Under the pieces are notes generated by a model. It saw nothing but the letters and a program-made list of their open reading frames with translations, was not told the DNA's origin and did not search any database. Below, one piece after another: positions 42,596 to 46,711 of a stretch of 64,000 bases of DNA (positions within the stretch are counted from its first letter, which is position 1; every line of letters starts with the position of its first letter). Source of the stretch: Tubulanus polymorphus. Its lineage: Eukaryota > Animalia > Nemertea. The DNA lies in assembly GCF_964204645.1 (NCBI RefSeq), contig NC_134036.1, forward strand, positions 992,001 to 1,056,000, given 5' to 3'. The position numbers were made by a program, and so were the translations under genes.

Positions 42596-44411
42596 ATGGC
42601 TTCGCTAAGATTGAATTTGGTCGTGGCAGCCTCAAGTCAACGAGGTATTGGAATAAACGGCCAACTACCGTGGCGAATAAAGTGAGTTTCTGTGCTGATT
42701 TTTAGAAATTAAACCTTGCTCAATATCCTTCTCATCAAGCCATTTTTTCATTTTGAAAGAAATTCACTTTTTTCATGTTCGATTTATTTTCTCAGGGGTG
42801 ACATGGCGTTCTTCAAGCGGATCACTTCTGAAGTTTCCGACAACAAGAAACAGAACGCGGTAATAATGGGGCGAAAAACCTGGGAATCGATTCCAGAAAA
42901 ATTCCGCCCTTTACAAAACAGATACAATATTGTACTGAGCCGATCGATCAGGTAAGATAAAAACAGTGCTCTCATCAAATACAGCAGTTAGCAATGTCCC
43001 GGGCTGCTTCTAAAGATCACAGGGGCTCTTCACGATAGCTGGGGGTCCAAAATCAAAAAAGATATGACCCAGTATCCTAGGTACCACCTACATAAAAAGA
43101 AATTCTTTTTATATAGGTGATACCTAGGATACTGGGTCACATCTTTGATTTTGGACCCCCAGCTATCGTGACGAGCCCCTGTGCTAAAGATAGGGCTTTA
43201 GACCTCAGACCAGTCTAAGCTCATTTTGGTTAGTTGGTTAGAGTCAACCAATTCAGTTGGTTGAAATACCCATTCAGTTATCCAGTGGATAGTTGACATA
43301 GTGACAATTAAAAGTCCTTCGATGCTATGATATCTATCGGCAGGTTATCTTTAACCTACTTTTCAGCAACTGCAGCCCCTGGGGTCAGTTGCACAGTCAT
43401 GACTTAGACTTAAGACCAGTCTAAGACCAACTTAGTTCTATAGCCAATCTAAGAAATTAAGACCAGTCTTAAGATTTAAGACTACTTTTGGACCTAAAGT
43501 CACGACTGTGCAACTGCGGCCCCTGATTTCAAGTCGTAAGATTAATAGTCTTAAGACTTAAGTCTAATAAACCGGTCTAAAATATCGTATCTATAATTAT
43601 TGCAGTAAAGTAGATGGCGCTCACGTAGCCGACAGCTTAGACGCAGCGTTAGAGCATCTTCGACAACCGTCGCTGGCGGCAACCATCGAACAGATTTATA
43701 TAATAGGTGGCAGTAGCGTATACGCGGAGTGTTTGGAATCGCCGTTGTGTTATAGGATCTATCTGACGCAGGTTTATTCCGATGTAACTTGCGACACGTT
43801 TCTACCCGAGTTCAACACTGACCTATTCAAACTCACTCCGTAAGTCACTAACTCGACTAATTCAAATTGACCTTTTCACCTCAAGAAATGTTTCTCTTTT
43901 TTTTTCGATTTGTACGAAAATTTAGGGTTTAGGCTAAAAAAGATGATACCTTGTTTCTCCTTATCAGCTGGTTCACTTTTGTAAATTGCGATGAAATTTG
44001 TAATCAGTTAATTTCTATAACTGCCGCGTCTGTTATTGTTAGCTTGATCATGATTTAAAAAAGTAATGTACATGGGGCCCAGTTTCACAAAAAGGATTAA
44101 GATTAAATCGATTTAAGATAATCTGAATTAATGAAGAAATTAAATCGATTTAAGAGTTGAACCCTTTTCGTGAAACTGGGCCCAGGGAAGATAGGCGGCC
44201 GGCCAGTTTTTTTACTCGATAATTTAAAACTTGGCTTTCCTAGTTTCCTAAGTTTCCATAATAAGATAAGTCCAAATTCAGCCTAGAATTCGGATTTTTA
44301 AAGTAAAACGAAATTCTTGATATTTGCAGGGATCCGAATGTCAACGGTGAAATACAGGAGGAAAACGGCATCAAATATAAAATCGAAGTCTATGAAAAGG
44401 TGACTCAGTGA
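42596..44411 (+). CDS. DHFR: Dihydrofolate reductase, canonical, 185 aa; exons 42596-42681, 42796-42951, 43606-43839, 44330-44411
   Basis: [92 protein letters not shown] at ~44517 and 44533. Confidence 0.97.
43018..43183. mobile_element. hAT-type fold-back MITE in DHFR intron 2
   Basis: Near-perfect 166-bp palindrome (CACAGGGGCTC...GAGCCCCTGTG) with an exact 8-bp TSD CTAAAGAT at 43010-43017 and 43184-43191. Confidence 0.9.
44075..44183. mobile_element. Palindromic MITE family GGGCCCAGTTTCAC...GTGAAACTGGGCCC; copies at ~32936-33065, 55967-56075, 62379-62508
   Basis: Recurrent TIRs around an AT-rich palindromic core. Confidence 0.8.
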
Positions 44412-44606
44412 ACCATGGACCTTTAAGAGAAACTCTGTATACTTAAAACAGTGAGAAAGGATGCATTTTAAAACTTATAAAAAGATACTGTTGCTCAAAC
44501 TTGAAACGCATTTATTTTATAAACATTTCAGTAATAAAAACGAACAATTTGATTAAAAATAATTAGCTGCTTGTTTTCTTACGTATTTTTTTGTCGTTAG
44601 GGAAGT

Positions 44607-46711
44607 ATGAGAGATTTCTATTGCATGGCGGCGATGGACAACAACCGGGGTATTGGTTACGCTGACGGGTTACCGTGGCCGCAACTACGGTCTGTATTAC
44701 CGGTACACGCGCGATGACGATGAAGTTGAATCTTGAAAGCGATAAGATTTCGAGATTTACGATATTTTCTTTTTTTTTGACTGACAGGCAAGATTACGAG
44801 TATTACACACAATCTCAAGAGCATACGAACGACCCAGGTACAGTCAACTCCCGGTTATCTGCACTCCACCACGCTCCCACTCCCAGGATACCAACCACTC
44901 CCCCACCCCTGGTTATCTGCACTCCACCACCCCAGGATACCAACCACTCCCCACCCCCCTGGTCATCCACCCTTGGTAACCGCAAAGTAAAAGCTTAGTC
45001 CCTAATCTATTAATGCTTTTAGCTTTCAGTTTCTCACTAAATTCTATAATAACAACCCCCGATATACCGCCCTTCCATTTACCTCCACCCCGCCTACTGC
45101 CAGGTTTTCTTAATGTATATCTCAATACAAATACATAGTAAAACACACCCGATATACCGCCATACTCTCTATACCTCCAAAATCATTCTGCACCGATGTG
45201 GTGGTATATCAGGGGTTGACTGTCTTTAGTCCGGTTTTAGCGTGAAAGTTTGCACCACAGGAGGCGCTGTTTATCCAATTGTTTTATTATAGATAAAGTG
45301 AATATGGTAATTTACGGTCGCACGACTTGGTTGAGCGTCGCCGAGCGCGAATTAAAAGCCAGAAACATCAACGTCGTCGTCAGTAGATCTATCAAGTAAG
45401 AAGTATCCAAAAAATATCAGCGCCAGGTTTTATAGACCGGGTATTTAAGTTACCCCTAGGGATAAATCCTCAACCTGGACCCGGTTTTAGAGACCTGGAC
45501 TGGGTTTCATAGATGTAGAGGCAAAATCGTCCCTTGGAACATTTTGAAATTAGTCCGTTATAACCATGGTTTCTCATTGTTACTATGGTTGGTTGTCATC
45601 CAGATTGATGATTTAACCCTAGGGATAACTTTGATACTCAGTCTATGAAACCGGGCCCTGGTATCTAAGTTACTCTAAAACCTCGATCAGGTTTTATAGT
45701 CATACCGGGGTAAATCCATAACCTGGGCCCAATTTTATAGACTGATATTAAAGTTATCCGTAGGGATAAATCCTCAACACGGGACCGGATTCTTAGACTT
45801 TCAAGACACTGGGCCGGGTTTTAAAGACTTTAAAGGGTTGGTACTCTATCTTACTATGATTTGTATAATTTTTGTATTGTTTTGTAGGGAACTCCCGCCG
45901 TATGCAAATTACTTGGTCCCCGATCTGGACTCAGCGTTAACGCTCGCGGCACGGTTACCGGTTATAGAAACAGTTTGGGTGAATGGTGGTCAGATGCTTT
46001 ACGAAACCGCGATGAAGCATCCGAATTGTCGACGAGTCTATAGAACTCGAGTTTACGGCGCGTTCAAAGCCGACACGTTCCTGCCGCAGTTCGAACACAA
46101 TTTTACACAAATTCAGTAAGCGTAAAAAAATATACAAAGACCCCGTTCGTAGACAAGGTCCCGACAACTCATTGAGCCCTTAAAAACTCCTGCAAAACGG
46201 ATAAATTCTTTTGAATATGCTCGAAACTCCTTTAATTTGATCAGGGTGGCGCCACTAACCCGGAAATCAGGGAAAAGTCAGGGAATTTTCTTTTATTTAA
46301 TCAGGGAATTTTCGAAAAAACGCTAAAAATAAGGGAAAAGTCATGGAAATTTGTTGAGATTGCTAGATCGCGTGTAAAATCAAACAGTTTCCGTCTACCC
46401 GGTATGTCTTACGTATTTGACTGTGTTAATTGATTGCATTCTTAGCAAATCAAGTCAGAGAAAACAACGTGTGTCTCAGGAAATAGTCAATGGAAAAGAA
46501 CATCAAATAAAGAGTGACTACCCTGAAAACCGATTAAACAAATCATGCTATCATTTTGATCCCACTTAATGTTGCCTCCTCGATATAATATTTTGCTCTA
46601 ATAAATATATAATTTCGTATTTTTTTCTTCGTTAGACTGCCTGAAGTGGACGGAACGATGAAAGAGGACAACGGCGTCAAATATCAATTCGAAGTTTTTG
46701 AAAGAAAATGA
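44607..46711 (+). CDS. Divergent DHFR-like protein, 179 aa; exons 44607-44689, 44788-44837, 45293-45395, 45888-46115, 46636-46711
   Basis: Intact spliced ORF: MRDFYCMAAMDNNRGIGYADGLPWPQLRQDYEYYTQSQEHTNDPDKVNMVIYGRTTWLSVAERELKARNINVVVSRSIKELPPYANYLVPDLDSALTLAARLPVIETVWVNGGQMLYETAMKHPNCRRVYRTRVYGAFKADTFLPQFEHNFTQIQLPEVDGTMKEDNGVKYQFEVFERK*. Intron phases match DHFR. Confidence 0.9.

Follow-up and report, generated by a model that had tools for sequence, protein, structure and literature searches.

Dihydrofolate reductase (DHFR) is one of the most thoroughly studied enzymes, and its animal form is regarded as a monomer with a single domain. The locus described here belongs to the nemertean Tubulanus polymorphus and lies in a window of 64,000 nucleotides (NCBI RefSeq assembly GCF_964204645.1, contig NC_134036.1, positions 992,001 to 1,056,000 of the forward strand; all coordinates below count from the first letter of the window), where the coding exons of a canonical DHFR (domain 1) are followed by a second reading frame for a divergent DHFR-like domain (domain 2). 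One transcription unit very likely yields two mRNAs, encoding either monomeric DHFR or a two-domain fusion, a reading that concerns the structure of the gene and not the substrate of domain 2.

The animal type-I DHFR (family PF00186; human enzyme, PDB 1drf) is matched by domain 1 in all key residues, and domain 2 shares its fold [template modelling (TM) score 0.91–0.93], its NADPH motifs and its catalytic acid. The differences are that two domains stand in one chain here and that domain 2 lacks the pocket for the p-aminobenzoate (pABA)-glutamate tail and mostly carries Tyr in place of Phe31 and Phe34. DHFR-TS of protists and plants (TS, thymidylate synthase) likewise joins an N-terminal DHFR to another domain, but here that partner is itself a DHFR fold and its attachment is optional. 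Identity with DHFR-TS was rejected, as no thymidylate synthase domain was found and PF00186 alone was matched, both in the exons and in full-length homologues; the DHFR-TS label is carried by mistake by database entries of Saccostrea, Mytilus trossulus and Acanthaster. Vertebrate zgc:153031 and the echinoderm DHFR-like proteins are divergent paralogues that also lack the canonical pocket and fall on domain 2's side of the tree, whereas they are single-domain in the records examined. Orthology with domain 2 is only suggested, and no paper was found under the name zgc:153031. A DHFR fold working on a non-folate substrate has a precedent in SacH (PMC10031226), which is a bacterial DHFR-like reductase and differs from domain 2 in being bacterial, single-domain and involved in antibiotic self-resistance. 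On the RNA side, the closest system is the composite terminal exon, in which a polyadenylation [poly(A)] site within an intron makes an internal exon terminal (PMC4227790); here, in contrast, both outcomes are predicted to be complete folded enzymes, the switch adds a paralogous domain and it is conserved across phyla. No literature description of a two-domain animal DHFR was found in a search that was thin on subscription journals. Both composite exons and gene duplication with fusion are established mechanisms; the surprise lies in a conserved optional fusion with a remodelled second enzyme.

The switch resides in exon 4 (Table 1). A GT donor after DHFR codon 182 (AAG/GTGACT at 44399/44400) opens a phase-0 GT–AG intron of 201 nt, which closes with a T-rich tract and an AG acceptor ending at 44600. 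Unspliced, the frame runs past VYEK into Val-Thr-Gln and the TGA at 44409–44411, and the resulting DHFR monomer, whose fourth coding exon is 44330–44411, has 185 aa and ends in VYEKVTQ. The acceptor is followed by GGA AGT ATG, with the ATG at 44607, and removal of the 201 nt gives VYEK-GS-MRDF in frame within a protein of 363 aa. All these elements had been recognized in a sequence-only reading of the window, together with an AT-rich gap of 195 nt between stop and ATG (27% GC), and they hold. Two details called for correction: the donor is present and weak, and its deviation, placed at +5 by that reading, falls at +4/+5 of GTRAGT by the consensus chosen; of the two AATAAA signals proposed inside the intron, the one at 44533 is the sole exact copy, that near 44517 reads TATAAA, and ATTAAA occurs at 44552. 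The 44399–44601 junction is also used by XP_074661162.1, a RefSeq protein of T. polymorphus found by profile search (363 aa, ‘uncharacterized protein LOC141913886’), which matches the window model through the junction and maps to the window with eight GT–AG introns. The fusion is an existing public gene model, computed and uncharacterized, and the gene model itself is not new. Both sequencing runs that contain the region carry 44606 T>G and 44620 A>T; the first turns the linker Ser into Arg, the second a Tyr into Phe, and the junction peptide of these haplotypes is GR-MRDFF, not GS-MRDFY; the Ser/Arg polymorphism at 44606 is relevant to junction-peptide proteomics. Because PF00186 matches in the whole T. 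polymorphus genome are confined to this locus (counts being lower bounds), domain 1 is probably the housekeeping DHFR. Taken alone, the DNA sequence says little for a fusion, because one random frame in three would fit; RNA contigs and cross-phylum conservation make the junction more than a chance match.

With one domain-2 exon as query against 1.84 billion representatives, the six best matches were proteins of 329–379 aa with two DHFR stretches, and a profile built from these six retrieved about 22 two-domain proteins, a search for proteins with two PF00186 domains having been proposed beforehand from the sequence. They come from annelids (Capitella, Paralvinella, Lamellibrachia and, as a partial protein, Dimorphilus), bivalves (Mytilus, three scallops, Mercenaria, Mactra, Solemya and Saccostrea), bryozoans (Watersipora and Bugula) and a brachiopod (Lingula, via a cluster member). 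Several are unbroken open reading frames (ORFs) on contigs of 1.2–3.2 kb and therefore stem from spliced mRNA, the genes being intron-rich; searches for contigs encoding a single exon, or Lineus isoform X2, gave no match, and a region search with domain 2, limited by its word index, retrieved the Tubulanus record alone. The two-domain DHFR is a widespread lophotrochozoan architecture and not a local oddity, and the sequences indicate that it is old and common to at least five lophotrochozoan phyla.

A phase-0 intron after the last DHFR strand is present in six of the seven lophotrochozoan fusion loci mapped. It follows V-Y-E/D-K in Tubulanus, Capitella, Paralvinella, Mytilus and Mercenaria, lies one codon earlier in Watersipora, and measures 370–5040 nt outside Tubulanus. 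Read-through reaches a stop after 3, 1, 1, 2, 1 and 5 codons in these species, respectively, against a median of 12.5 codons at 16 other phase-0 introns of the same loci (Mann–Whitney p = 0.002), and the inter-domain donors show 1.7 of four consensus bases against 2.8 for 76 other donors (p = 0.005); both p-values overstate independence, since the species are related, and are indicative only. Among Logan contigs of Mytilus RNA, six carry the fusion, and the monomer also appears, with the end VYEKVR that intron read-through predicts; monomer, domain-2-only and fusion records stand within one cluster in Lingula.

In T. polymorphus, one of the two sequencing runs is DNA-like (X1) and the other RNA-like (X2), and the RNA evidence consists of assembled contigs, 15 contig matches of X2 being listed at this region, with 174 more beyond these. 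Run X2 represents spliced RNA, as seen from joints at introns 2 and 3 and from contigs ending at 42681 and starting at 46636. A contig covers the monomer 3′ untranslated region (UTR) and stops shortly after AATAAA (Table 1), and a single contig that starts at 44599 spans domain-2 exons 5–7, one contig being found at 44606/44620. Close to the donor, three contigs carry C at variant 44393, their greatest distance to a contig end being 23, and contigs end at 44392 and start at 44415. A graph simulation at k = 31 reproduced this pattern only when a fusion transcript was added to two monomer alleles; monomers alone gave one variant contig with a distance of 31, and fusion on both alleles gave extra contigs. 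Monomer and fusion isoforms are very probably both present in T. polymorphus RNA. Since the donor, the in-frame stop, the AATAAA at 44533, the 3′ UTR contig and the branch occur together, with both isoforms found in Mytilus, exon 4 has the hallmark of a composite terminal exon, namely a used donor in an exon that can alternatively extend to a poly(A) signal within the intron. The proposal made from sequence, that splicing and intronic polyadenylation compete to give monomer or fusion from one promoter, thus finds support in the RefSeq junction, in X2 contigs that need both transcripts, in an intron with a quick stop in three other phyla and in the two Mytilus RNA isoforms.

The favoured explanation of one unit with two mRNAs would work as follows. 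When donor 44400 is ignored, cleavage after AATAAA 44533 would produce the normal 185-aa DHFR; when the donor is used, the stop codon and the poly(A) signal would be spliced out, and a 363-aa protein would combine the canonical DHFR with the divergent DHFR-fold domain. Domain 1 would reduce dihydrofolate, and domain 2 would bind NADPH and act as a reductase of another substrate.

PF00186 is matched exon by exon in both domains, and the homologues carry two such stretches. Domain 1 possesses an acid at 30, Phe34, GRKT, Ser59-Ile60-Pro61, Arg65-Pro66-Leu67, Arg70, Gly116-Gly117 and Thr136, most of them invariant in 20 first domains. The predicted structure of Tubulanus domain 2 (predicted local distance difference test 92.9) has a TM score of 0.93 to human DHFR. 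In a model of the Paralvinella fusion (predicted TM score 0.49, shallow alignment), two DHFR folds are connected by a low-confidence linker, so that no fixed domain interface is predicted. Domain 2 retains, in human numbering, Trp24, acid 30, Gly53-Arg54, Thr56, Ser76, Gly116-Gly117, Tyr121, Thr136 and Asp145. Among 27 domain-2 sequences, the catalytic and pterin-ring contacts are kept (Asp or Glu at 30 in 26, Trp24 in 25, Thr136 in all), as are the NADPH motifs (Gly53-Arg54-x-Thr56, Ser76, Gly116-Gly117 and Asp145 in 25–27 per position, with Arg54 and Asp145 in 27/27); Met52 is mostly Lys. The pABA-glutamate pocket (Ser-Ile-Pro, Arg-Pro-Leu and Arg70) is lost, with Ile60, Pro61 and Pro66 outside the five commonest residues of their columns and Arg70 in 2/27 sequences versus 20/20 first domains, where Ile60, Pro61, Pro66 and Arg70 are invariant. 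In human DHFR, Arg70 binds the glutamate α-carboxylate and Ile60/Pro61 contact the ligand (PMC7435474). In a quick tree, every second domain joins eight stand-alone relatives in a single clade of 28 (Shimodaira–Hasegawa-like approximate likelihood ratio test 99); the zgc:153031-type paralogues of echinoderms and vertebrates stand next to it, less well supported (93).

The long conservation of cofactor and catalytic residues suggests that domain 2 is not dead, and the missing tail pocket speaks for a substrate that has no pABA-glutamate. Dihydrobiopterin is also recycled by the DHFR of vertebrates. A pterin lacking that tail, e.g. dihydrobiopterin, has close to an even chance of being the substrate of domain 2; that it is a weak or antifolate-insensitive DHFR is possible with distinctly lower probability, and a non-pterin imine reductase or a non-catalytic binding or regulatory module would each be unlikely.

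A recent Tubulanus-specific duplication was rejected, the two domains being 35% identical and domain 2 grouping with those of other phyla. Ancestral intron positions are common to both domains, and domain 2 therefore originated from a genomic duplication and not by retroposition. Of the introns present in both domains of Capitella, Paralvinella and bivalves, two are missing from Tubulanus domain 1 and one from domain 2. Additional stand-alone domain-2 copies are found in Lingula and scallops. In a Ridgeia protein (P0045), domain 1 is joined to a low-complexity repeat and not to domain 2, probably by mis-annotation. Acanthaster XP_022106530.1 was rejected as a member, because its order is reversed (divergent domain first) and its splice falls inside the last strand; it is probably two tandem genes joined. 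At that locus (L008:3001-13326) a divergent DHFR-like gene lies directly upstream of canonical DHFR, and tandem linkage of both paralogues may predate the protostome–deuterostome split.

Several observations weigh against the reading adopted here. The 44399–44601 joint is not among the 15 X2 matches listed, and the evidence comes from contigs, not raw reads; the monomer end in X2 is a contig end at 44545, and contigs cannot show RNA ends. The RefSeq protein is a computed model in which read support is not visible. The Tubulanus RNA junction is thus indirect, unlike the gene anatomy, the conserved intron, the Mytilus RNA isoforms and the fold and residue pattern. The best-fitting simulation puts the fusion on one of two alleles (C44393; variants 44393 and 44414); exon 8 nevertheless shows two haplotypes in X2, and allele-biased splicing, pooled animals or filtering may lie behind the one-allele pattern. 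In many domain-2 sequences, a basic residue 1–3 positions before Arg70 might substitute for it. In Lineus (L009:10001-12752) and Liolophura (L011:10001-13547), domain 2 is encoded by a stand-alone gene, and the 10 kb upstream of it contain no DHFR; the fusion is therefore not essential; in the Lineus gene, the acceptor still stands just before domain 2 and is fed from a 3-codon first exon. Saccostrea echinata has AT, not GT, after VYEK (L012:9140-9175), and its annotated 383-aa fusion, with no GT–AG junction there, is doubtful and may represent two genes.

These last cases bear on a rival explanation by two tandem genes, with domain 2 expressed mostly by itself, from a start site or 5′ exon of its own, and with minor read-through splicing as the source of the fusion. 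Stand-alone genes (Lineus, Liolophura and possibly Haliotis), the donor lost in Saccostrea, a Met of domain 2's own near the acceptor in Tubulanus, Mytilus, Capitella and Watersipora, and domain-2-only records of Mytilus and Lingula all speak for it, but a domain-2-only ORF may simply be a 5′-truncated contig. The explanation becomes improbable given that the sole X2 contig over exons 5–7 has a depth of 86 versus 25–69 on monomer-path contigs, that X2 branches exactly at donor 44400, that no X2 contig covers 44546–44598 among the matches listed, and that full fusion mRNAs were assembled in several species. The comparable or greater depth of the X2 fusion path would also suit the opposite view, in which the fusion is the sole functional product and the short transcript is premature polyadenylation noise, as would the 363-aa form in RefSeq, with no Tubulanus monomer among the profile matches listed. 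This view is very improbable, considering that read-through completes the normal DHFR C-terminus with a stop within 1–5 codons in 6/6 species, that the donor is consistently weak, and that Mytilus has an assembled monomer and Lingula an annotated one. The sequence-only reading had also offered a dicistron of operon type, separated through trans-splicing of a spliced leader at 44600, for which the short AT-rich gap and an acceptor 6 nt before the ATG might be quoted. Nothing else was found to support it in the contig evidence: the homologous intron measures 370–5040 nt outside Tubulanus, fusion mRNAs spliced in cis do occur, and the branch in X2 lies at the upstream donor, in a contig pattern that fits cis-splicing from 44399. 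A literature search on nemertean trans-splicing returned a single paper, on a chaetognath. A dicistron is extremely improbable.

Table 1. Features of the two-domain DHFR locus of T. polymorphus (window coordinates)
Feature	Position	Strand	Evidence
Coding exon 1, domain 1, aa 1–28	42596–42681	+	RNA contig end at 42681
Coding exon 2, domain 1; catalytic Asp31, [13 protein letters not shown] motifs	42796–42951	+	PF00186 E = 5e-11; X2 joint to 43606
Coding exon 3, domain 1	43606–43839	+	PF00186 E = 2e-11; X2 spliced joint to 44330
Composite exon 4 in its internal form, which ends after VYEK at a weak phase-0 donor	44330–44399	+	de Bruijn branch after 44400 in X2
Exon 4 terminal extension; Val-Thr-Gln-stop and monomer 3′ UTR	44400–44545	+	X2 contig 44415–44545, depth 34.7
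AATAAA, monomer polyadenylation signal (ATTAAA at 44552 is a second candidate)	44533–44538	+	RNA contig end 7 nt downstream
Inter-domain GT–AG intron, removed in the fusion isoform	44400–44600	+	XP_074661162.1 maps across; position kept in other species
Exon 5; linker of 2 aa, then the beginning of domain 2 with its ATG kept at 44607	44601–44689	+	X2 contig, depth 86.2
Exon 6, domain 2; catalytic acid kept as Asp214 (codon 44792–44794)	44788–44837	+	
Exon 7, domain 2; NADPH motif GRTT retained, pABA-Glu pocket remodelled	45293–45395	+	PF00186 exon scan; alignment
Exon 8, domain 2; Gly-Gly motif, Thr136 and Asp145 equivalents	45888–46115	+	PF00186 E = 1.5e-7
Last coding exon; RNA contig continues to at least 47127	46636–46711	+	RNA contig; RefSeq protein mapping

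Around these features, DHFR intron 2 contains a long palindrome and very high-copy repeats (about 43018–43183 and 43284–43611; contig depth >100,000), resembling a miniature inverted-repeat transposable element. An X2 RNA contig has 75 unplaced letters before 42353, which may reflect an upstream 5′ exon, an indel allele or an edge effect. The probable coding exons of an upstream gene (39737–40533) gave no Pfam match, and the tail-to-tail neighbour on the minus strand (47697–51420) has Methyltransf_32 matches and is probably METTL25-like.

As a tentative wider reading, held at somewhat less than even odds, domain 2 would be an ancient DHFR-fold enzyme with a new substrate (e.g. free pterin), attached to the housekeeping DHFR by a conserved, regulated splice/polyadenylation switch, and maybe the counterpart of zgc:153031 in vertebrates. 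With two small domains, the idea is directly testable. The analysis also corrects database labels, since these proteins are named uncharacterized, viral DHFR or DHFR-TS-like, and it has relevance to antifolate sensitivity in farmed bivalves. The two-domain DHFR across five phyla, with a rebuilt pocket in its optional domain, suggests that animals have an unrecognized reductase and that folate or pterin metabolism is regulated by 3′-end choice.

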